A stretch of DNA of 64,000 bases from positions 29,263,504 to 29,327,503 of the forward strand of contig OZ037765.1 in NCBI GenBank assembly GCA_964035545.1. Direction: 5' to 3'. This DNA is from Bugula neritina. Its lineage: Eukaryota; Animalia; Bryozoa. The translations under genes and the position numbers were made by a program. Each line of letters starts with the position of its first letter. Positions within the stretch are counted from its first letter, which is position 1. The notes below the pieces were generated by a model. That model saw only the letters and a list, made by a program, of their open reading frames with translations, ran no database searches and had not been told where the DNA came from. Positions 23,810 to 64,000 of this stretch are shown piece by piece.

Positions 23810-25085
23810 TAATAATCTTAAAGTTAAAGTAAATGTTAAGCCTAAGGCTAAAGTTATGACCATGATAATATTATTATAATCATAATGCTGCCAAAATTAA
23901 GAGTTATCATGACTAAATGAGTTACTACTTACTATTACTACTAGTACTAGCACTAGTACTACAGTCCAACTTTATAAGACTATACTAATAGTAATATCTC
24001 ATATTAAATCTGAATCTTAATCAAATAGAGTAATTTCTAAGCAATACTAATGCTTATACTGAAAGTAATAATAAAAATATTAGTACTAATAATATCATTA
24101 ACAGTAAATCAAAATGCAATACTAAGTCAAATAGTATCAGTATGAGTAATAGTAATACGGAACTACTTATACTTCATAATTTAAATTATACTATTAATAA
24201 TAGTATAACTGTAAGTATAAGTAATTTAGTGTTACTAATAATTTAATAATAAGAGTTACTTATTAGTATGAGTATTAAATTCAATATTAAGTAATGGTAT
24301 GAGTATGAATAATAGTACTATAATTATTCAATTTCAAACCCATACTCATACTATAACTATTACTTGATTTTGATACTAAATCTAATAGTAACAGTTTTAG
24401 TTTAACAATGACTAATTAAACTACTACTAATAGTAATACTATAGGCATAGCCTCTAAGTACAACTATAACTATAACTTATAGTTATAAGTATTAGTATAA
24501 CTATAACAGTATAACTATAAGTATAACTATAGCCATAGGCATAGCCTTTGGCTTTAGCCATACTGATACTATATGTACTTATAGTTATAGCCCTAGGGAA
24601 AGGCTATAAGTATAACTATAAGTATAAGTATAGCCATAGGTAAAGCTATAATACTACTACTAGTACTAGTAGGAAAAGTAATATTATTCATAATTAATAA
24701 TTAAATTTAATATAACATTAACTATAAGATTAGGTATAGCCATGCCCATGAGATCCGATTACTATTAGTATCAGGTATAACATTTAGTTTTACTCATTGA
24801 ATTTTATTTGGACTTAGACAGTAACTTAGAGCATCAGTCAGTATAACTATAAGTATAACTATCACTGATAGTTATACTTATAGTATCAGTATTACTATTA
24901 GTATTAGATTTACTTTTAAAATTAGTACATAAGTTCAACTTTAAGTATTGGTATATCACAATAATTATGATTACCTTCACCTTGTCATTATGATTATCAA
25001 ATTGAAATTCAATATTAATATAATTAAAATATTAATAGGCAATTTCAATTTAATCTTTTACTTTTAGTTTTAGTTTTACTTATAG
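23810..25085. repeat. 6-bp-periodic degenerate low-complexity tract (ATAACT/ATAAGT/ATAGCC/TTTAGT units), left flank of the FAM135-TBC1D23 promoter
   Basis: e.g. agtata actata agtata actata agccat aggcat agcctt. Confidence 0.8.
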
Positions 25086-25089
25086 ATTT

Positions 25090-25390
25090 TATCAATCAAT
25101 CATAAAAATATATAAGTCTAATGAGTTGTTTACGTCTACAATATTATTATATTCAAAAAATATTCACGTCAAGTACCCATATGGCAATGAAAAGAAGTCT
25201 CGACACTAAAAGCACTGAAAGTAAATGATCAACTCTTTACGAAACGCTATCAATAATGATCCAAAACTATGCGTATGTAAATGTTGCTCTAAATTATTGT
25301 CCTAAACATACATAAACTTGAATCGCTAACCAAAGATTAACCTTGACATATTACATTTTCACAGCCAAAATTAACTCAACGTCACTTACC
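25090..25390. promoter_or_regulatory. Putative bidirectional promoter for FAM135 (-) and TBC1D23 (+)
   Basis: Divergent genes with the TBC1D23 ATG at 25391. The FAM135 first coding exon has an acceptor at about 22267, implying an upstream non-coding exon (candidate donor near 25133). This is a CpG-richer complex island between two periodic tracts. Confidence 0.55.
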
Positions 25391-36025
<10,635 letters not shown>

Positions 36026-38403
36026 TTGGAATTGTCTGTTGTCGGTTACTATGGCTACAGTTGAGATTCCTTGTTGCTATGGTTACAGTTATGTTTTTAC
36101 TGCTGGGAATAAAGAGTGTGCTTTTCCAACGCTGTTAAATGTTTATTGCGATAAATGTATATAATTTTGAGAACTATGTTTGGCATAAATTCTGTTTTGA
36201 CTGGATCATGATTCCATGTTGCTATTTATAGTATCCTATCCTTTGCTAATGGTACTATGTACTAATATGTGTCTTACTCAGTGGTGCGTGTAGTTATATT
36301 GCTAGTCTCAGCTAGTCTCAGCGTTCTAATTTTCAGTATTTTCATCTCTATAGTGTATTATCGTAGTTTTCTAATTAATTATAATAATTATTGATCAACT
36401 AATGCGATGAAATGCATTGTTTTATATATTTAGCTCGGGAAATATCAGCTATTAACATTAACGCTAGATGCATGTCTTCAATTTAGCACTTACTCATTCA
36501 ATATAGAGCACTAATGATTATCTATCATAGCTAGTACCATTACGTACTAGTCTACCATATGTTATATTTAATATCAAATTCATTAAAACATAATATTTTT
36601 CTCCTGCTTATTTATTTTACCTAATATATTTTGTGCAATTTCAATAACATTTTGAACTTTGGTAATAAAATTAATTTATCCAGCACTGCATCGTTGGAAC
36701 TGAGCAGTCATTTATAGTATTTCCCTACACTCTTCTTACATTTCATTAGTGGCGGTTCTATTTTATCTATGAGGCCAAGAATTTGGGCTTAAATTAGTTT
36801 ATTCAAGCACTAATTCTCTACGGAGGTTATTTTTAATTCTAGGACCCCTAAGATTTAGTGCTGACCTGTGAACGTATGTAGAGGCAACTTTGCTCTATAA
36901 TAATCATTACTCTGTACGGACATATTACTCTAGTTACAAGAGAACTGATGTAAGCTACACCTCTTGTTCAATTATAGTACGTAGCAAATGATATGTGATG
37001 GGTAGTCAACATTGAGCTGCTATTTATTAACCTGATTAGCTTACTTACATAATGATTTTTCTACTTCCCTACAGTTTAAATGCACTGGTTGATGCAAACT
37101 TGTTTAATGAAATGTGCTCGGCATGAGAGATATATACCTGTATAGACCCTATGCATTCCTCCATCAATCTTGTGCTGTGTTATAGCTATGCATTAATTGA
37201 TGACAACTATAAGTAAATCATGAGAGATAAAATATAATTCAAACCACAAGTTATGCATTTATAAAAGTATATTAAAAGTTGATGATCATGCATAATTAAT
37301 ACATATTGCAAAACAATCAGCAAATAAGTTTGTATTGCAGTTGGAGAAGTTAATAAAATAATGCTATATTTACTCACTAAAAAGTAAAATTAGAATAGAC
37401 AGTTTAAGTTCCAGTTTGTACTTATTATATCCAACATCAGCTGGCAATGAAGTTGAACAATTAATTGGTTCACTATTGGATTACATTAGACCTTATCCTC
37501 AATAATTATATTAGTTGGTTATAATTCCTGCACTGAGCACACTCTATAGTAATAGTGTCTGTTGATTGAGCTTCGTGTCATCACGTGCAAGCAAATGCTG
37601 CTTCTGTCAGAAATAATAAAAGCTTTGTTTATTGTTACTTGCTATCTAATTTTTATACTCAGTTTTCTCTTTTATACCAGTCATTCAGGTTTTCAAAATA
37701 CGCTTCTATTTGCATTTGGGCATACATACACTGTGACGAAATCATTTTCAACGATTTCTAAAAAGGAAAAACTCATCTAAAAATATTAAAATAACTTATT
37801 CTATTTTTGCGCAACTTTTTATAGCTATAGCAAATCTGCCAAAAATAGAATTATTGGTAATATCCTAAAGCTACTGTGTACTGTTTAGTGTATAGTATGG
37901 TAGTGTTAAATCTATTAGATCAAAGGCATTTTTTAAATTTCAACTTTGCTATGTTCCAAGCCAAAGTTCTATTCAGTCATATCTAACCGTCATAAATCCT
38001 AGCCTAAAATACTCAATCCAAAATTTTCTGTGGGAACCCTAAAGTGTTTACGAAGATACTTAGGCTATAAACTAGTTTTGACGTGTGATCTGATCCATCA
38101 ATTAACACAACATTATCAGTATAAAGTTTATAGAGCTCGGCAAAGCCCACCCACTTACAGATTTTCAGCCAATAGTATTCTTATGTTTACACTAGGTATT
38201 ATATTAGAGTGGCATACTTAGCATGCCAGTACTAATGCAGTGTTATTAGCTGGTCAGTAAAGTTGCCGTAGCTGATAGCTCTAACTAAGCTCAAATAAAT
38301 TTACTATTTTATATTATTTGTAAGCTTTCTGGAATATACTGTTTTCTTCCATTAGCCAACAGATTGAACACATTGAAAAGGTAGTGTACTAGAAAGACTT
38401 ATC

Positions 38404-41400
38404 ATGGATAAATCCAAGAGGAGACAGCTATATACCAGAGATTCTACAGCACAGCTGATGGCTCTGGGTTGTGAGTAAGATTTCATTACTAACTAATTTA
38501 AACACCCCCCCCCCCTCCCCCCAACAATAAACCTCTTTTAAACTTTGTACCAAAGCAGCTAAAACATGAGAGTAAATACTAGGAGTTTACGAAGTTACTT
38601 TAACCTAGCCTTAATTTCCAAATTGTAGCATTTTGACATGTAATGACAGGCCAGTGGTTGTTTGCTGTATCTTTTGTCTTCAGTTGGCAATGTCTCTTTA
38701 GTTTGGCATGGTTGCTGCAACAGCTTTTCTGGGATTTTCATATCTTTTACTTGAAACTTCAACATTTACATTTTTCCATGGTGAAACAAGAGAATTCATA
38801 CATTTCAGGTTTTAGTCTCAAGTTCAAATTTTAATTGAAACCGAACTTCAATAATAATGTATGTTGGTGGCTTTTTGATGTCGTTAAATACTGAGTTAAA
38901 AGAACTATGTAAATAACTATGAACACTTATATTAATACATCATCACATGTCACCTAGGATTTATACAACTCACCAGTCAATTAGTAGTAAACGCAAACTC
39001 AGATCCTTTTTGAGTCAATTATGGTTGCACTTACATTCAAAGCTGATCTATTTCTAATCTGGCCCTATTCAAACTGCCAAATTAGTAAAAGTTGATTCAT
39101 ATCAAAGTCATGCTGTCCTGAAGTTTTGTGCTCACTATAGATCAAACATTATGCTGGCATGATTTGTTGAATAATGACTAGACTAGCTATAATAAGTGTA
39201 CCAACATGTCTAAAGTGATAAAGAAGAAATAAATGAAAGCTTAGAATGGTGTGAAAGTACCAGTTATATTTTTTTAGCTTCTGGGATAACAGATGAAAGA
39301 AGTGAGATAGGCACAGTCATGTTGCTGAAAGACATCAGTGAAAGTAAATCAACCAGATTTCACTGTGACTGTGAGCATGTGAAGGATAGTGAACAGCTCA
39401 TTCCCAGGTAGTAAAACATAACATTCAATAACACAAATAAAACCACAGCTTATATGCAAATGAGCACACTACGCCATATTTTATACTTTGTTTTCTCTGA
39501 TAAAGGGAAGACAACTTTTTTAGTTACGATCAGCTTCAAAATTTTTCAGTTCATGTTATAAAGGCACAAAAAGCAGAATTTCATAATTTATGAAACCTTT
39601 TTTTATAAATTAAGCTATTAAAATAATGAAATGTTATATTGCTATAACTATTTCAATGCGAATAATACTAATACTGGACTAGTGCCATGATGCCAAAATT
39701 TGACACCAGCAATTTGTTTGCTTTCTAATTATAAGGTACCCATTATAAGGTGGCTGTTTAAAAACTATTTTAGCTCGTCTCAGTTAATTAATTTGCACCT
39801 GCGGACAATGCAGCCAGGGACGATAGTTTTATGGTCTTTCTTGCTATTTAATTTATGTAGTATGCCACTAGTACATAAGTTGTTAATAAAGGAGATTCTC
39901 CATATACTGTATATGGGAAACACTGTATAGACATTGGAGTTGATATACAACATATAATATATGTGTTGCTTTTGGGTTTTGGACATGTATGAGCAATCAA
40001 TGGCACATATTATTATTGTTGTGTTTGATGCATATATATTGTATGAGTGGCCCAATCCCTAGTTGGAAACTTGAGTAACCGGCATTTTATACATTCATTC
40101 TTGTTCATAATAAAATTTCAATTTTCATCATCTCCATACCTTGCTTACCTATTGCATTAGCTGAGGCATTTTTGTATTTAAAACTTTTGTTCAAACACCA
40201 ATTTCCAAGTGTTTTTGAAAGAATATTTACAAGTTTAGTCGGTTATACCCCTAAATGTGTTTAAACTCTACCTGCCAAAATTTTTCACTTCATATGTATG
40301 TTGATTTAGCTACCTTGTGGTAACAGAGAAATACTTGTACGTGCTTCGAATGACCGAGCAAGAAAACAGGTACATTGTCAAGTTGCGGAGACAAATCAGC
40401 ACCATCATGAAGATCACGAAGAAGGCTAGAGCGCCAGACGTAATCAAAATAGAATATGGTTCACGGGACCAGACAGACACACACATAACTGACACAGACA
40501 AGTTCAGAATTCCTAAGAAAGCAGGTAAATTGAGTTCTTATCTATATTATTTACCTGCTTGCTATGTTGTTATGAAGAATAATGGCTGGTAAGGAAGTAA
40601 AATAGTGGGCTCATTACACACTAGATGTTTAAACTGCCTATTGTACAATGAAATAAGCATTTTAAGTTGTGCTTGCACTCTGCAAACTATTAAAGCTATT
40701 TGTGGCAGAGGATTATATATATGTGGCAGATAAATTATATTATGGTAATTTAGCTACATGCTATGTAATATTCATGAAGAAAATGATATGCCAATAACTG
40801 GGTTGGCTGTAACGGTTTAAACTTTACTACCAACTGGCGGACGATTTTTTAATTCTTTTTGTATTCGTTTGCTCATTACATTTCAGTATTTAACTAGGTA
40901 GTTGTGTATGTTGTGTTAGTATTACAGATTAGATATCAGTTGATAGTGTGAGTAGAGTTGGCTACAAAAACTAATATTTATGCACATGGAGTTGTCAGAT
41001 CAATGAAGGTTCTTGATCTAAGCAATTTACTAGATTGGAAGAGACTAGAAAATAGGTTAAACCAAACCAGCACCTACAAATTTACCAGTAGATACTATAA
41101 AGATACACACATGCTTCCAGACATATAGACTCAGAGTTGTAATTCTATCAGATTCCTTCGGTCATGTAGGAAAAGCCGGAAACATAAGTTCTACAATGGT
41201 TTAAGCTTATGCCAGTTTGCTGCTAGTTATGAAATGTAATAGACTATTAGTATAAGCTACCCCACTTTTCTCTTCTGCTGCTATAAAAAGTCACAGGAAC
41301 AGTAGTATGCTTAGGCAACTGACTGCCTACCACCTGGCAGACATATAATATGATAATATTACAGACCATAATATATGTATGTGCTGTGTGTCATATTTTA

Positions 41401-44014
41401 GTTGACTGAATTTATCCATATATACTTTCAAAAATCAAAGTTGAAGTAAACTTTTTATATGATATATAACTCTCTGAAAGTTAGACTGCACAAGTTACGG
41501 AAATGGCATCATGTTACTATAGTTATTATATTTTATTTCCTAAATTGAAAATGACCAAAATCATTCTATTTTATAGTTAGGCAAAATGATTTTTCGAAAA
41601 TAATAAGCTTTAGCTATAGTAAGTATATGTGTAAGGCAATTTATTGGCGCCTTACATGTTTAATGAGTTTATAATATAAAAGTATGGCTTGCAATAATAT
41701 TTTTGTCTAGTCTTTGTGAGAAAATACTGCCTTACTTACTTACCTTTACACTCCGTGTAGCCAATTAAACCTACATTTCCCTAACTATTATTACATATTA
41801 ATTGCAATAGCAAAGCCTCTTAATTGCAAAATACCCTACTGGGTACACACTTCTGTTGTTTTACAACATTTTGCAAGTAGTCATACGTGTTGCAATTGGC
41901 AAAGATAATTTGTATTTCTAAGGGATGATTATTGCATATTGAAATAAAAAAATTATGAGGGTTTTACTGATTTGCATTACTAATCACTGTTTTAGCTTTA
42001 TTGCTTCTGTGCTGCACAGTATAGGCGTAAACTGGGCCATAAAGCTATTAATACAGGCTGCGTGCTATAATATATAAAGTATATAAAATATTCCAGAACT
42101 GTGCACCTAATGATGAACTGAACTTCTAATATTTGCAATAGGAAGTAAAAAACCTCTTGTTAGTCTAAAATCTTGGCAGCTGCTTAATAAAAATGTATTA
42201 CAAAAATCAAAGGTGGTAACTTGTGACTAAACAGTTTGACTGTTATAGCTCTGGTATTTAATTAGGTCACTTATATAGGTTGAATTACTGAGGCAACAGG
42301 TAATACATGCTGATGAGTGACCGTACATTTATGTAGTTTGTATGGTGTGTATATACATGCTGGCTTATAGTAAACTATTTCGGTTAGTTGGGTGGAGTCA
42401 TAGTATACCTACTAGTTCCAAGAACTACCAGTAAAAAGCGGCTAATCATTAAAGTATTTTAGGCATACCTGAGATGATAAATTACCAATTGCCTGATAAA
42501 TTAACCTGGCATAAAGTTTAAAATATGTTTAATATTGTATTGTGATAAACGAGAACTGCAACTGAAGCCTTACTATATTCAGTTCAAAGTGTTTTAGAGC
42601 CACTTGAAGCAAAATTTTGTTGAAAAATCTTGAACAGCAGGGACGGCTGTAGCTATATTTCTAAGAGGGCTGTGTTGAGTGTACATACTACAAAATACTG
42701 CCCTGGCTTACACAATCAGTTTCCTTTACTGTTTTAGCAAATGATAGAGCTGGTAACTACAAGTTATGCTGCTTGGGGTTTCTGGAAATGTTTAACACTG
42801 AAAACCAGCCGAAAGCAGTAGACATCTGTACAATGCTACAATACTATCATAAACTACTATAAAAAATACAAGATGAGTAATTTGACCGAAATGTTTTTCA
42901 AACAAACCAACAGAACTATTGTTCCCTATAAGCTGCATGGAATACAAACCAATACTTATGTCAGAGTGTACTGAGTATGCTTTAATATTTTGCGATCATA
43001 ATAATACCACGGGCGCGGTTATATTTAGCTACTATTGTATCTCAGGGCTATAAAATAGTACGGTGTTAGTACAATGACTGACTTTTCCGTAAAAGCAGAA
43101 AAGCAAAGCCTTGTACGCATTCCTTGACTACTACAGCAAAAATACTACCTTTATGATCTAATCGATAGGCTAGTTTTAGGTTATTTGGTGCAAACTGGTT
43201 TAGACTACTTACTGGAGAAAAATGGTAAAACTATGCTATAGTGCAGTTTATTATTAGTCAAGTAAAGTAAGTAACAGATTAGAGTAAAAACTTAGCATTA
43301 ATTACCACACCATTTTAGAAAATGCACACTATGCATGATGAAATTTATGCTTCCAAATATTAAAGTTTTGCTGGTGAATACAAAACATCTGCCAAGTCAA
43401 TCTAGGCAAACAGTATTATTAGGATAAAAATTACAAAAAAACGTTTAGCTATTATATTATAATTATTTTCAAAAGTTTATTTGAAGCCTATGACCATAGC
43501 AGAATAATTTAGATCCCCATAGACTTGCCTGCATATGAGAGTGGGTGCACAGAATGTATCATTGATATTATTGAAACCAAAACAGTATTTCATGCATATA
43601 CCAACTGTTGGTTAAATAAATATTTGTAGTGATATATTAAATTGCATACTCTGGCTACAGATATTCAGGATTAGTTCGAATTTTGAAATAAAATTTTAAC
43701 AAAGCTGTTTGGTTTAGTTAAACATAACAGTGCAGCTTTAAAACCTATTTTCTTATTGGCTCAAGTGATATTGTTAGAATCTATATATGACTAGACAGTT
43801 ACTGAGCTCTTAAAATTGTGACAAATAATAATTTACACACACTTGCATACTTCTCTGTCAACCTAATATAGTATTTCAGTAAATTATAACCATCAAAACT
43901 TGATGTACATATAAAATTGAACTGAAAATGCTTTGATTTGTTATTTTAGATACGTTCATTCACGTCCTAAAAGGTATAAGAAGTTCTCCCTCTCCAACGA
44001 GAAGCAGTACCTGA
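38404..44014 (+). CDS. Stand-alone paralog of the TBC1D23 C-terminal PH-like domain, 158 aa. Exons 38404-38470, 39278-39407, 40310-40524, 43950-44014
   Basis: Four GT-AG exons (67+130+215+65 = 477 nt) join into an open frame: MDKSKRRQLYTRDSTAQLMALGSSGITDERSEIGTVMLLKDISESKSTRFHCDCEHVKDSEQLIPSYLVVTEKYLYVLRMTEQENRYIVKLRRQISTIMKITKKARAPDVIKIEYGSRDQTDTHITDTDKFRIPKKADTFIHVLKGIRSSPSPTRSST*. Exon 3 is 215 nt, the same as TBC1D23 exon 15, with the same phases. AATAAA at 44073. The first and last exons are less certain. Confidence 0.78.
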
Positions 44015-45977
44015 GGTGAAGTTAATGTCAACCAGATATTATTAGTACATTAATTTTCTTCATGCTGTGTACAATAAAATACATGTGAATACAATTCCAA
44101 AAAATTGAATTATTAAGCATTATTTTACTATGGTATTGATTTAATATTACCAATCTCCATTACAATCATAATCGATGACTTTAAATAAACGTAGCTTATT
44201 TCATTAAAAATTAGAAAAATATAATTTATATACTAGTTTATTATTTTTACAGATTTTATGATATTTTTCTTACCCCAAAATAAATAATGACATAATGCCT
44301 AATTTTAGATAACAAACAATTTTTTTAGGAAGTTTTCATCTTTTGCCCATTATATGATATTAAAATTTTCTGTAGTTATTTCCTGTATAACTATTTTTAG
44401 TTTGTAGAATATTACTAGAATAATATTTTTATAATAAAACAACAGCATGAACTATATTTTTATTAGTCTGATTATTATGTAATTCTTTTCAAACTCACCC
44501 TAGGTCAACAAAATTGTTGCTCTTTCATGTTGCACAAAAACGTTTTGGTACTGCTGTAAATGAAAATGCATTTTTTTTTATAATAATATTATGTAAATCA
44601 AAAAATAAAATTTTCATTAATAAAGCCTATATTGCAACAATCTGATTTTATTTTACTTTTTTGCACATTTTATCATCTGAGCAGAATGTTGAAAATTTAA
44701 AACAGTATTGTAATAATTATTACATCAACGTCTTGAAACAATCATATAGCCACATCTTCTTTACTATAAAATTATTTGACCAGTTTCAAAAATAGCAATG
44801 TTTTTTAAGAGTGGAAGCCGGTGTTTTGGTTTATGTGTATGGCAAAGCTCAACAGCTTTGAACCACAAATATATCGATATACAAAAGCTATATTGTGTGT
44901 TAGCTCGCTGTTTTTTCAAAAATCATACTAGCAGTAACATACAAATTTCCTACAAATATGGCATTTTAAGAATTTTAGTTCTTAGAAGTAATGCATTTCA
45001 TCATAAAGGAGTATTATCATTCTCCAGTATAGACAGAACAGCCCAGAGCATTTTGATGAAAAACATGGTTTTTTGTTGAGTATTTGAATTTAGAGTAAAG
45101 TCTCAAAAAGTCCAGTGATATTACATGGTTAAGGTATAGCCTTTGATAGCTGATGTATATACACATATACTATGCTCAAAGTCTCAGCACAGTATTCAAG
45201 TTCCCAAACTATAAAACTGTGTACACAGATACACAGCTGAGTAACGGTTGAAACTCAAAGCAAAATGTGAATGAATAATTTTTATTTTTATAAAATCATA
45301 TTAATTTACATATAATATTTATCAGGAGTTCACAACCAGTAGCATGTAAATAAGAATCAAACATATGTGATTACCTTCACGCTGACAAAAATACTAAAAC
45401 ATTAAAGTTCAATTATATTAAACTGATTCCCACTAATCAAAATGGAGAAAGACGTAATTCTGATCACATATACAAAACAAGCTACAACATCTTCAACTGT
45501 CTGTAATGATATGAAAAACTGAGGTCTTTGAAACTGTTACACTAGCTTATGCACTGATCAGGAATTTAACCAAGAGTACAAAAATCATGTTATTAGCAAC
45601 ACCATTGGTGGCTATGATGTAAAATCTTCTATGACTCTTGACGGATGAACAGGAAATTAAGTAGCACGACCATCGATAAAGTCATATAATACAGATTTTG
45701 ATTTTGGTTGTATAGCAGCATTTCATGTAAAAACACACATTAAAATGTATAAACATTTAATAAATTTAATAGATAAATAAAAGGTTTTGTTATAAAACTA
45801 AATTTCATCACACAATTATTATAAGTAAAGTATTGACACGTATAGAGAAACTGAGCGGAACATCTACTCAATGATTATACTGAGTATACCAATAGAAAAA
45901 TAATGCAACTAGCAAGAGAACAATTCTGAACTACTATCAGTACTGACAGTCCAAGCTAAACTTGCAGACATGAAATT

Positions 45978-48900
45978 TCAGCAGCACTTCTTCTTAGGCC
46001 GAGTCTCAGTTTTAGGAGGAATGGGCGAGTCATTGGATACTTTATCGTGCAGCTGTATTGAATCTCTAAGTTTCTTAATCCTGTAGTGATCAGACAGAGT
46101 GGAGAGACATTTCTCAAATATACTCTCAAACGTTTCCGCAACTCCTTCTCCTGTTTTACTGGATGTTTCAAAAAATGGAATGGAAACGTTTCCGCCTTGT
46201 GACAATAATTCTGAGTTGATGTCTACAGAAAACTGACGGGCTTCCTGCGCATGAACCGCTCTCTTTTCTTCTCCAGACTCCACGAGATCCAGTTTAGTAC
46301 CGACAACCATTTTTAAACAATTACTTTCTGGAAGCAAGGATAGAAATCGAGACCTACAAGAGCCATTGTAAAATAACAGTAGATAGAAACTGATGGGTGA
46401 CAGCATGTAGGGGAAGAGAATTTCAACATCAAGTGCTACAAAGGATATTTTCTCACTTATCCAATTGTAACCCTGTACAAAAACCTGTACAAGGCAGCTT
46501 AACTGTTATCAGCACATCTTAAAATAACTAGCTTATTTAACCTCAAAAGCATATCAGTTTAAAACTTTTTCATATAAAAAATGTTCTCAGAAAAACTAAT
46601 AGACAGGTTTACCGAAGTTCTTCAAAGCTGTGTCGATCAGATATTTGATAAGCCATAATGGCCGCCCCTGCATCTCTACAGTAAAAAGTACTCAAGCCGG
46701 CAAATCTCTCCTCTCCAGCAGTATCCTAGTACATGCAGATATACTACACAGTATCCTAGTACATGCAGATATACTATACAGTATACTAGTGCATAAAGAT
46801 ATACTATACAGTATACTAGTACATACATATATACTATACAGTATACTATACAGTATAATAGTACATACAGATACAACATATCACAGTGATATGGGCCATC
46901 AGTCTTCAAGTGAAAAGCTTAAAATTAAAAACTCATAACAAAAGTTAATTGATCCCACAGATCAAACCATGACCAAATAAAAGCTAAAATACAACTGCAT
47001 GTAAATTTAACTCCAGTAAATTTTGGCTCAACAAATTTTACTCTTCTCTTAAAAACACAGTGAAGCCAGTGTAGTGGCAACAGACATTACTTAGAAAACA
47101 TTATGGCAAAGATATTTTTCTAAAAATGCATGAACATGTGCCTGTAAAAATGTATGTACCATCCCACTGAACTGGTTTTATGCAATCCTTAGCCTTGCCA
47201 AATTTCTAAAATGAAACCTAGATTTTCCCACAAAATATTCAGCATTGTGTATATGTCATACGCTTAAAACTCATCCCTGCGTTATACATCATAAACACTT
47301 TAGTTTCAAAAATGGCAGACTCAAAAAACAGAAGCCTTTGGTTTTTTGGTCATTAGATTTTACATTGTTACAAAAACAGCAAACACATTATCAGTGTAAT
47401 AATTTTTGCTTAGCCATTATTAACAGTAACTTTAGTTTTTTAAAACCTACTTTACTACCTTTAAATTTGAGTATCATATACTATGCTACAAGACAGTAAA
47501 ACTAGTAGATATATGAATCTGAGCAATAATTCCTAACATTCATCAATAGAAATTAACTGTTGAAAACCCCAAAAAGGGAGACAAATCTAAAAATTGGAAG
47601 ACACTCGACAATAAATAAATTTAACGCTTATATAATATGAACCAATGAATTAAAACTGATATTTCGATATTTCAATGATATTAATTACTTCATAGAACAC
47701 ACAAAATACACCTTAACACTAAACTCCTTGTCTTTGTTAATGTTAAAAGTAGCAAACCGCATAAGTTGTAATTTTTTTACTAAAATACAATTGACATGAG
47801 AATAATATCCTGTGAGGAACTTCAGAAATGCATAGCAATAAACTTACCCAAATGGCGACATTATACGGACCCCATTGCTTCAGGAAGAATGATGCCCCTA
47901 GAGTCTGCACAATAAAAAATCAAGCAAATTTTCACCAAAATATGTAAGAAATGGTTCAAAAAGATATCTGAGCTAAAGGGTATAACCATTTGTGATGACG
48001 CAATGCACTTATATTGCTTAAATTATTCGTATGTCATGCACAGCCTTTATACTAAATGCATTATGAAAAACTATCACTGAAGTTGTGTATGTGTGCTCAA
48101 GTTTGCTTTTAGTGAATTAATAATTCAAGTGTTGAAATAAGTGAAATAGTTTGGAGAATGCATAAAACATGGTGCACAAGATAAGTGAAATTTTACTTAC
48201 AGTAGCGATGTTCGAGTCAAACGAGTCGTTGATATATCGAGTTATAAAACATGTTTTACCAACATCCGCAGATCCTACCAACACTACTTTTAAATCTCTA
48301 CAACAAACAAGGTTCAAGCAACGATAATGAGTGGCGATGAATACTTATGTATTTAAAAATTTGAAAGGTGGTAGATAGACCAAGATAAAAATTACTAACA
48401 ATATTCTTTTATTAAGAGAGCAGTTGAAAAATAATAACTGTACTTTTAAGCTGGGAAGCCTTGCAGTATTCAACTTTGAGTATCACACAATCAATTTGAA
48501 TTAGATGCTTCGAACATTATGACTGTGAGTGACTAGTAGCCAACATTTATAACATTTGTTTGCAATATTGTACTAAAATGAAAAATTATAAATGTTATTC
48601 TCAGTAAAGACTTCATCACTTGTCAGCCAGTTTCAATTTTTATCGTAATATTATTATTGGCGTAAATTATTGAATATTAACAATCCCAACTTTTGAATGT
48701 TTAATATTTTAATAGGCAGTAACTTTAATTCTTGAGATTTGTTGTAAAGTAAGTAAATTTGTTTTCTAACTTAGTGGCTAACAATATTTAGCATCAGCTC
48801 TATAGTGTCTCGGTCACTGAACTTGATGGTATTGTCATCAGCAAGTGAGTTGCTATCTTGAATTGTTCAAGACGCATGTTGAAAATTTATTTTAAAACCA

Positions 48901-61701: not shown

Positions 61702-64000
61702 CAGATTGCAGGCAGTATAATTTATTCAGCTCTGATGTTTCCTATAATGCATTTATTTAAAAGCTCATGGATCATTGAATCATGTTTACTGAGGAATAAA
61801 ATCAATAAGTTGACGGCAAATGGTACACAAAAATACCAATAATCCTGATCTTGGTGAGAAGATAAACAATGTTAATGATGATAATTTCACTCTTAAAGTT
61901 TCCTCCTTTTATCAGCCTCATGATCAATGATTTCATAACATATTGGCACTTTGCTTATTGCCCAGTTTGTATGAACATGTAGAGCACAATTAAGTCATTG
62001 TAGAATGTTCACCCAATCAAATATACAATTCCTATAGATTGTTAATTGTCCATCTTAATGAGAATTGACTTTTTAGACAAATGTCTATTGGGTACATTAG
62101 GCCAGCTGGTCTCTCTATACTCAAAGTCATTACATCTTTCCCTCACTGTAGAACATTACATATGATATAACCCAGATTCTTTGATTAGCTGTAAGCATAT
62201 TAAAGGCTATTTAAGTTAATAGGTTTGGATGTAAAGTAGATAATCATGGGTCCAGTTACTAGCATAACAAGCTTTGATATCTGTCTGAAGGGCTACAACA
62301 ATTGGCTGTTATTTGATAACTACCAGCTTTCATTAGTCACATGTTTAGCATACTTTCTATTTAGCTTCCAGACTTTAGATTTAGATTGCTTGGGATTTTT
62401 GGTCTAACGAAGCCCTGACCCTACTGTTTTTTTCAATGAGCTCATTTGATTTTGGTAAGGGTTGTTTGCTCTTGAAATATTTTGCATTCTCAGGGAGTTG
62501 CGTGCTCCTAACCTATATTTGGACTCTAAATACAAGTCTACTATACAAATCATTTAGCTAATGAATTTACGCTAGTTTTTGTTGAAATAGAAAACAACTT
62601 CTGTTTTAGTTAAGCTTATCTAAGAGTTGCTATAGCTATTAGGGCAATAGTTAATTTATATTGTATGAAATCAGACATTGTAAAATGTTTTACTAACAAT
62701 AAACTTTAAATAGCAACTGCTCAAATGTAGAAAGATTAATAACGTTCCTATAACTTCTAAAAATTCCTCAATGAATAAAACATAGCAGGGTGTGACAATA
62801 AACCTTTGGTCATATTTTTATAAAATAGTTGGACTAAATTTTTAATTTCTTCTGAGTCACTTAGTGAAAATGTTTCACAACCCATTATATCTGTTGCAAT
62901 GTGGCAATGATACAAATCAATAGGCGTTCTGTAATGTAATATTAGTAATTTACCCAGTTGCTTGCTGTATATACACGTAAGCGTTATCTGCTTTATATCT
63001 ACCCTGAGCTCATTCCTTGCGTGCCATTCTGTAATTGCATGGTATGGTGTCTATTGAGACAGTGCATAGATTTGTATCTATTGACTTAGGGTGATTCATC
63101 AGAAAACATAAAAATAATCATATTGATTTCTGATATGGAGCTGAGCTAACAATATTATAGGTTGTGTCAACAGACAAGGGTTGGTAACTCCACAATTAGG
63201 TTTAAAACTTAGTAATTAGTCAACATATAATCTATTTGTTTTAAAGTTGATTTTACTTAGAATCTCAGCATTATATTTATGAGTTGGTTGAGGTTTTGGT
63301 ATAATATGTTGATTAACATTGTTACAATTGTTATAATATCCCTGGTAGTAAGGGTGTGTTTTTGGCTGTTAGAGGAAGAAAGACTAAATACCTGGGCAGG
63401 TCAACTATATGTGGTCCATGGCCAATGAGTTCTATTAAAGTTTGCAATCATTTTATAAGACTTTATAGCTTGACCAACGAAGTAGTCTTTGTGCTATTAT
63501 GAATTCTGTTCAGATTGGTTTAGCTTACAATTGACCTTTTCCTAGAAATAGGGCTTAAAGGATTGCTCTATCTTGTCTAATAAATGGCCATTTAGGTCAA
63601 ACACACATAATATTGTGTTTTTCTAAGCATGCATTGACAAAAAGCATTTGACCAAAGGTAGAAAAAGTTAGTTGAAGTTGAGGGTGTAGATTGGTAACAG
63701 CCAAAACGCCGATTTTGAAATGAGCTGGGAAATGTGACGTAACAGCGCCAGCATTCCTGCTGGTCACGTGACTATACAAATGAATAACTATAGAAATATG
63801 ACTGTGAGATGTAATCTTTTAGCTTGTAATTTGTATATTTATAGAAGTGCAAATGTGAATTATCTCAACCTATAGTTTTTTGACATTTTAAATAACATGT
63901 ATGTGATAGCATTAGGCTATATTTTGCTTGTAAACATTAGAAAAAGCCTTGCAAAAACATGCATTCTTTAGGATGAATGCCTGCGATCGATCTAAACTAG

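Follow-up and report, generated by a model that had tools for sequence, protein, structure and literature searches.

A small conserved gene family built on the TBC1D23 C-terminal PH-like domain, with a probable stand-alone member downstream of TBC1D23 in Bugula neritina

A mini-gene downstream of TBC1D23

TBC1D23 is normally a single-copy bridge between the golgins of the Golgi and incoming endosomal vesicles, and defects in the human gene result in pontocerebellar hypoplasia. A stretch of 64,000 nucleotides (nt) of the bryozoan Bugula neritina (contig OZ037765.1, positions 29,263,504 to 29,327,503; G000:C1:29263504-29327503 in a 216-Mb assembly), referred to here as the window, is AT-rich (G+C about 32%) and harbors a complete TBC1D23 gene, which is followed 2.4 kb downstream on the same strand by a four-exon mini-gene of about 158 codons that we name M1. 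Taking all observations together, it is probable that M1 is a real, stand-alone protein-coding gene, that it belongs to a small conserved family, and that it provides a putative free cargo-binding domain acting as a competitor or an adaptor.

All exons and phases of M1, on the forward strand, were read directly. Exon 1 (38404-38470) comprises 22 codons from the ATG on plus 1 nt, specifies a leader motif (..TRDSTAQLMALG) and ends in a GTGAGT donor in phase 1; an in-frame TGA lies nine codons upstream of the ATG. The 130 nt of exon 2 (39278-39407, phase 1 to 2) encode the first PH-like strands (..RFHCDCEHVKDSEQLIP), and the 215 nt of exon 3 (40310-40524, phase 2 to 1) the PH-like core, including the cargo-peptide-binding strand (IMKITKKARAPDVIKIEYG). 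Exon 4 (43950-44014) completes the PH fold with its C-terminal helix, continues into a short SPSP tail and stops at a TGA; an AATAAA poly(A) signal was read directly 59 nt past the stop codon (44073-44078). The coding exons contain neither stops nor frameshifts.

The upstream gene was delineated by tblastn with the TBC1D23 orthologues P0015 and P0026. Its coding region (27332-36025, forward strand) includes the TBC, rhodanese and C-terminal domains, its exons are about 36-76% identical to the proteins of other animals, and it has a stop of its own followed by an AATAAA at 36108-36113. The last three exons (34071-34185, 115 nt; 34867-35081, 215 nt; and 35934-36025) have phases 1, 2, 1, and the central one matches the Pfam domain TBC1D23_C with an E value of 9.5e-19. 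Exons 2 to 4 of M1 parallel these three exons, with the same phases and a central exon of 215 nt in both genes; exon 2, at 130 nt versus 115 nt, differs in length. The two central exons are identical at 27/70 positions (39%, BLASTP E 2e-15), a likeness well in excess of what chance would give, and the basic patch that reads SKKK in TBC1D23 reads KKAR in M1 and KKAK or TKAR in most of its relatives. The original prediction, which had been made from the letters of the window, was accurate in all of these respects: its exon coordinates, phases and shared 215-nt exon agree on direct reading, the roughly 40% identity of the central exon and the change from SKKK to KKAR hold, and the open coding exons, the separate phase-1 first exon and the AATAAA are present as it described them.

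Using full-length orthologues as tblastn queries, TBC and rhodanese exons were found solely at 27332-33354, in the upstream gene, and M1 has none. As far as can be judged from its sequence, M1 is a copy that arose by partial tandem duplication of the TBC1D23 3' end, and its predicted product begins with a short, conserved leader, continues with a single PH-like domain of the TBC1D23 type and closes with the short SPSP tail. The TBC1D23 exon that precedes the three duplicated ones (33273-33352, forward strand) also has a phase-1 donor, and M1 exon 1 was considered as a possible descendant of it. The two agree in only a few residues (DK, R, Y), which is too weak a resemblance to uphold that descent.

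Some further features of M1 may be recorded. At 38336-38361, about 45 nt before the ATG, a pyrimidine tract leads into an acceptor-like sequence (..cattag/ccaacag/), and this site, ending near 38353-38361, could mark a trans-splice site or the acceptor of an unseen 5' non-coding exon. A C-rich tract (cccccccctccccccaac) occupies 38506-38530, early in intron 1, and intron 3 is single-copy.

A second copy in the genome and relatives in other species

Besides TBC1D23 and M1, a six-frame search of the whole genome brought up one further locus, on contig C2. This is an intact paralogue, M2, consisting of five exons with canonical splice sites throughout on the reverse strand (C2:7933243-7929605, loci L003 and L004). 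Its first exon of 97 nt begins with the ATG and ends in phase 1, and its second exon has the 130 nt of M1 exon 2, to which it is 45-46% identical. The central exon is divided by an extra phase-0 intron into parts of 85 nt and 133 nt, and the last exon opens with an M1-like helix that runs into a Ser/Arg-rich tail of 114 residues with four RRxS sites of the basophilic-kinase type. A search of the window with this tail found no longer alternative last exon for M1. Within 20 kb around M2, queries with the C-terminal exons of TBC1D23 matched only the exons of M2 itself, and no TBC1D23 lies nearby.

An exhaustive HMMER search with the M1 central exon returned, besides ordinary TBC1D23 proteins, ten clusters of the M type, all of them from unannotated Logan, ENA or JGI assemblies. 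Exon 3 of M1 is 55-68% identical to its orthologues, with exon boundaries alike, and exon 2 is 45-54% identical to the orthologues and M2. Gene order can be followed on L015, a 3.25-kb contig with short introns on which the last TBC1D23 exons, 60-73% identical to those of the window, are followed about 1 kb past the stop by an M gene. This M gene has its own ATG exon (1897-1954, ..MRDSTAQLLALE, phase 1, GTGAGT donor), 70% identical to M1 exon 1 over 17 amino acids, and then exons of 130 nt and 215 nt; the phases 1, 2, 1 and the 215-nt central exon hold for both TBC1D23 and the M gene. Both the order of the two genes in tandem and the separate start exon have thus been preserved.

Similarly, in a third species (L020 and L019) all four M1 exons are found, their phases unchanged and exon 2 again 130 nt long. 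An ATG exon with a phase-1 donor and an exon 2 of exactly 130 nt are thus present in M1, M2, L015 and L020, and the leaders of the family conform to the consensus [KR][KR].L..R[DEK]S.A..L..L. Four contigs from marine-biofilm metagenomes (L011-L014; SAMN08714533, PMC6355793) contain exon 3 and a last exon with the ag/AT phase-1 acceptor of M1. Their last-exon peptide reads D-AVIKVLKSLRVSPSPLRE-stop, compared with D-TFIHVLKGIRSSPSPTRSST-stop in M1, and the motif D..I..LK..R.SP is found in exon 4 of L011-L014 and L019, which stop at about the same place as M1. L018 is an orthologue of M2 and has the extra phase-0 intron at the identical position, indicating that the split between M1 and M2 predates those species.

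One relative, P0008, is a complete open reading frame (ORF) of 186 codons with an upstream in-frame stop, on a contig of 998 nt from which all three conserved introns are absent. This contig is probably a transcript that encodes a stand-alone protein of the M family. A homologue search with P0008 in protein databases returned only P0008 itself. Both M1 and M2 have orthologues in other species, which are apparently fouling marine invertebrates. Several other matches were set aside: P0037, which had clustered with P0030, resembles alanine racemases, is bacterial and represents a clustering artefact; P0006 and P0007, with long multi-stretch matches, are repetitive sequences unrelated to the M family; and P0012 and P0023 were discarded on the pattern of their multi-stretch matches alone, like P0006 and P0007.

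Selection and age of the duplicate

M1 is under purifying selection. Over exon 3 together with its flanks, the JGI metagenome contig L017 shows 88% identity to the window, on the basis of which it is assigned to a sibling species. Between the two, exon 3 itself retains 96.3% nucleotide identity with zero indels, the changes being seven synonymous ones and a conservative Glu-to-Asp replacement, whereas identity drops to 83% and 86% in the introns on either side, whose alignments have 40 and 84 gapped columns. For the exon, the resulting Nei-Gojobori ratio of nonsynonymous to synonymous change (omega) is 0.034; at least seven synonymous changes out of eight have a binomial probability of 1.2e-4. 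In more distant comparisons synonymous sites are saturated, and nonsynonymous divergence (dN) ranges from 0.18 to 0.36. When the window is compared with the L015 species, the central exon yields a dN of 0.356 in M as against 0.281 in TBC1D23 (1.3x), and exon 2 evolves faster in M, with 45% identity as opposed to 73% for its TBC1D23 counterpart.

The duplication that produced M1 is old, since the tandem copy is common to the L015 species, whose TBC1D23 PH exon is 63% identical to that of the window. The maximum-likelihood tree built from the central exon region sets the M clade apart from all TBC1D23 sequences (support 99/97), but with 72 columns the age of the duplication is beyond the resolution of this tree. 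A tree that forces M to group with the TBC1D23 of its own lineage has a slightly higher log-likelihood and is not rejected (approximately unbiased test, p 0.6), and a duplication restricted to this lineage is therefore compatible with the data.

The original prediction had viewed M1 as an old, selected duplicate that retains the C-terminal domain and has lost the golgin-binding end. Its age is borne out by the shared tandem copy, and selection by the dN/dS comparison with a relative that the prediction had proposed as a check (exon 3, L017) together with the conservation of every exon in other species. The loss of the golgin-binding end is reflected in the separate ATG exon, the absence of TBC and rhodanese exons, and the existence of a stand-alone paralogue and homologue. 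The prediction did not foresee M2, the occurrence of the family in several other species or a possible descent of exon 1 from the preceding TBC1D23 exon.

Fold and cargo-binding residues

The domain shared by TBC1D23 and the M proteins is the C-terminal PH-like domain (PF19430; structures 6JM5 and 8QQF). P0008 matches Pfam TBC1D23_C at 58.7 bits (E 6.6e-16), above the cut-off of 26.5 bits, and the PDB entry 6JM5 at E 1.4e-14 over the whole domain; the corresponding match of M1 exon 3 alone has an E value of 6e-5. An AlphaFold model was built for P0008 on a 22-row alignment of M and TBC1D23 sequences. Its predicted confidence (pLDDT) exceeds 93 for residues 59-176, and its N-terminus is disordered. 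With this model, Foldseek returned 8QQF_A and 6JM5_A as the best matches, with TM scores of 0.88-0.89, root-mean-square deviations of 1.3-1.6 A and an E value of 2e-12, while other PH and PTB domains followed at E 6e-5 or worse, a gap of about seven orders of magnitude. The structure prediction that had been suggested as a check on M1, here applied to its homologue, thus places P0008 closest to the TBC1D23 PH structures. A feature search of the ESM Atlas returned generic PH/TH1-like clusters only.

The human TBC1D23 domain, whose direct recognition of cargo came to light only recently, binds an acidic Thr-Leu-Tyr (TLY) motif in the tails of cargo proteins by beta-augmentation on its strand 5, and its contacts are V626, K628, I629, I639, the K632-K634 patch and K672, mutation of which abolishes vesicle capture (PMC11093223, Cattin-Ortola et al.). 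When position n of M1 exon 3 is equated with human residue n+594, V626 is an isoleucine in M1 and invariantly so in the M family. K628 is retained as lysine (K or R in the family), and so is K632, which is invariant; I629 is likewise isoleucine (I in 9/10 members and L in one), as is I639 (I or V). K634 is replaced by arginine in M1 and is K or R in the family. K633 has become alanine in M1 and in 9/10 members, and S631 is lysine in M1 and in 6/10, giving an extra lysine at 631. A lysine that corresponds to K672 by eye is kept in the last-exon helix of M1. In terms of the alignment alone, 6/8 of the human TLY-contact positions are conserved or conservatively replaced in M1, and no part of the M family is better conserved than the binding strand.

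The likeness between the M proteins and the TBC1D23 domain extends to the 39% exon identity, the intron positions and phases, the 215-nt exon, the fold of the modelled homologue (TM 0.89) and, judging from the alignment, most TLY-contact residues. M1 nevertheless differs from TBC1D23 in several ways. It is not attached to the TBC and rhodanese domains, and so is without the golgin-97/245 anchor; it starts from a separate exon that specifies a conserved leader, and it has a longer exon 2 and other C-terminal tails; and the M family has KKA(K/R) or TKAR in place of SKKK, as well as T640K and F641I-type changes. The replacement of K642 by E or Q, beside the binding strand, is a further change that is diagnostic of the family. 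With alanine in place of the central lysine of the KKK patch, the specificity of M1 has probably shifted.

Surroundings of TBC1D23, M1 and M2

A convergent gene for a small GTPase (Ras/Rab/Roc-like; reverse strand, 45978-48317; Pfam Ras E 9e-7 and 1.8e-6) forms the 3' boundary of the M1 locus. It ends in a KKKCC sequence of the prenylation type, and its 3' end faces M1. Upstream of the first TBC1D23 coding exon, 23818-26199 is filled with dense, degenerate tracts of 6-, 12- and 18-bp periodicity (units such as AACTAT, TGATAG and ATACTC). The introns of TBC1D23 contain a 21-bp unit repeated five times at 31284-31388 (85% matches) and (TGCA)n and (CATACA)n microsatellites at 30958-31083. Rfam and tRNA scans of the part of the window between 33 and 49 kb gave no match.

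Directly upstream of M2, as its sole neighbour on that side within the 20 kb around it, lies a gene with gelsolin repeats (reverse strand, C2 about 7938460-7941999, corresponding to locus L006 4463-9999; Pfam Gelsolin E 7e-6 and 2e-5). To see whether a whole block or genome had been duplicated, 100 kb around M2 was compared with the window by tblastx, which revealed zero other shared genes and a single repeat, about 95% identical between 63542-64000 of the window and G000:C2:7893169-7893630, which is the sole other similarity between the surroundings of M1 and M2 and is presumably a young transposable element. A bioRxiv preprint of 2026 puts forward an ancient whole-genome duplication of bryozoans.

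Alternative readings of the M1 locus

Several observations weigh against the view of M1 as a stand-alone gene for a cargo-binding domain. M1 exon 3 on its own scores 21.9 bits (E 1.2e-4) against PF19430, under the 26.5-bit cut-off, because it spans no more than about 60% of the domain; the domain match expected by the original prediction is consequently found for the homologue P0008 and falls short for this exon alone. The evidence on the fold likewise comes from P0008, which is 42% identical to M1 in the central-exon region. The family-specific K633A, the invariant T640K and the replacement of F641 by I, L or V could mean a different ligand, and binding of the TLY type, along with any effect on vesicle capture, is inferred throughout. 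Tracts of 6-bp periodicity, of the type present at the TBC1D23 promoter (23.8-26.2 kb), were not found upstream of M1. Finally, a 95-amino-acid open frame around exon 3 matched only the sibling fragment P0001 in protein databases, which yielded no spliced product, a result that is uninformative.

It is conceivable that the M1 exons are not a gene at all but an alternative 3' terminal cassette of TBC1D23, in which the phase-1 donor at 33352 splices to the phase-1 acceptor at 39278, yielding an isoform with another cargo-binding domain. The compatible phases, the position of M1 on the same strand 2.4 kb downstream, a tandem order that is kept in L015, and the failure to find a promoter signature upstream of M1 are all consistent with this idea. 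Against it stands the start exon, in which an ATG preceded by an in-frame stop and followed by a phase-1 donor is conserved in M1, M2, L015 and L020. Moreover, M2 has a like architecture on another chromosome with no TBC1D23 in its vicinity, P0008 is a complete stand-alone ORF, and TBC1D23 is already provided with its own stop and AATAAA, all of which makes the cassette highly unlikely. Occasional read-through chimeras of TBC1D23 and M1 would add to a stand-alone gene and not replace it. Even less can be said for M1 as a decaying partial duplicate that is still open by chance. Partial duplicates usually decay, and M1 lacks most of its parent gene, but an omega of 0.034, an exon free of indels between introns rich in them, intact splice sites and phases for all four exons in several species with saturated synonymous sites, and a second intact paralogue, M2, are not what a pseudogene leaves behind. 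The evidence of selection on M1 excludes this reading, and the probability we would still assign to it is negligible.

A third possibility accepts that M1 is a real stand-alone gene but holds that its PH-like domain now serves another ligand or compartment, one that has nothing to do with endosome-to-Golgi cargo, so that it neither competes nor cooperates with TBC1D23. The family-wide substitutions on and beside the binding strand (K633A, S631K, T640K, F641I/L/V and K642E/Q) would fit such a change of function, as would the faster evolution of M exon 2 (45% versus 73% identity for the same pair of species) and the presence of conserved elements that TBC1D23 does not have, namely the leader, the SPSP tail and the M2 tail with its four RRxS sites. 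On the other hand, the hydrophobic pocket, the flanking basic residues and the helix lysine have been kept, and the conservation of the binding strand above all other stretches suggests a similar mode of accommodating a peptide in a groove. A complete change of ligand thus appears unlikely, if somewhat less so than the cassette.

A possible role in vesicle capture

Returning to M1 as a stand-alone gene for a cargo-binding domain, the M proteins most likely still bind short acidic/hydrophobic motifs, either those that endosome-to-Golgi cargo displays in its cytoplasmic tails or those of FAM21, given that the contact residues are mostly kept and the strand that carries them is the best conserved. 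As the M proteins are without the golgin-binding half of TBC1D23, they may function as competitors or as adaptors. As a competitor, a soluble M protein would vie with TBC1D23 for cargo tails or FAM21 and thereby tune the capture of vesicles; as an adaptor, it would tie cargo to another partner by way of the conserved leader and the phosphorylatable tails. A more specific proposal, which we put forward tentatively and regard as rather unlikely in its full form, is that the M proteins constitute a lineage-specific "headless tether" that occupies acidic motifs of the TLY type on carriers coming from endosomes and so sets the rate or selectivity of golgin-97/245-dependent capture, under the control of phosphorylation of the SPSP tail in M1 and the RRxS-rich tail in M2, with the leader recruiting a partner of its own. 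If true, this headless tether would represent a new regulatory layer on a tethering step that has been thought to be constitutive.

Small dominant-negative proteins that originate from partial gene duplication are reduced to one interaction domain, with which they compete against the complete parent protein. The M proteins resemble them in having a single interaction domain, an origin by partial duplication and possible competition for the ligands of the parent, but differ in their conserved extra motifs, which suggest partners of their own. A closer parallel is found in engineered constructs of the TBC1D23 C-terminal domain only, in which the PH-like domain alone binds cargo tails and captures vesicles when anchored (PMC11093223). 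The M proteins may be looked upon as natural counterparts of these headless constructs, although the latter have the human sequence and are artificially anchored to mitochondria, whereas no anchor is known for the M proteins.

No paper on a stand-alone TBC1D23 paralogue was found in the literature on its C-terminal domain and FAM21, among the results listed by a further search none joined TBC1D23 with paralogues, gene duplication or bryozoans, and the stand-alone M family was not among the annotated proteins matched by the exhaustive HMMER search. What is already known is thus the domain and its parent TBC1D23; what is new is a conserved, stand-alone family of two paralogues with a leader and tails of its own. 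So far, this family is found in one poorly studied invertebrate lineage, which limits the reach of these observations. Within that lineage, M1 and M2 present a clean case of a new gene that was born by partial tandem duplication and was later duplicated again, and they indicate that evolution has used the cargo-recognition module of TBC1D23 on its own. The M family is therefore a candidate competitor or adaptor with which cargo-selective tethering could be probed, and the substitutions in its groove may inform the specificity of motif recognition.

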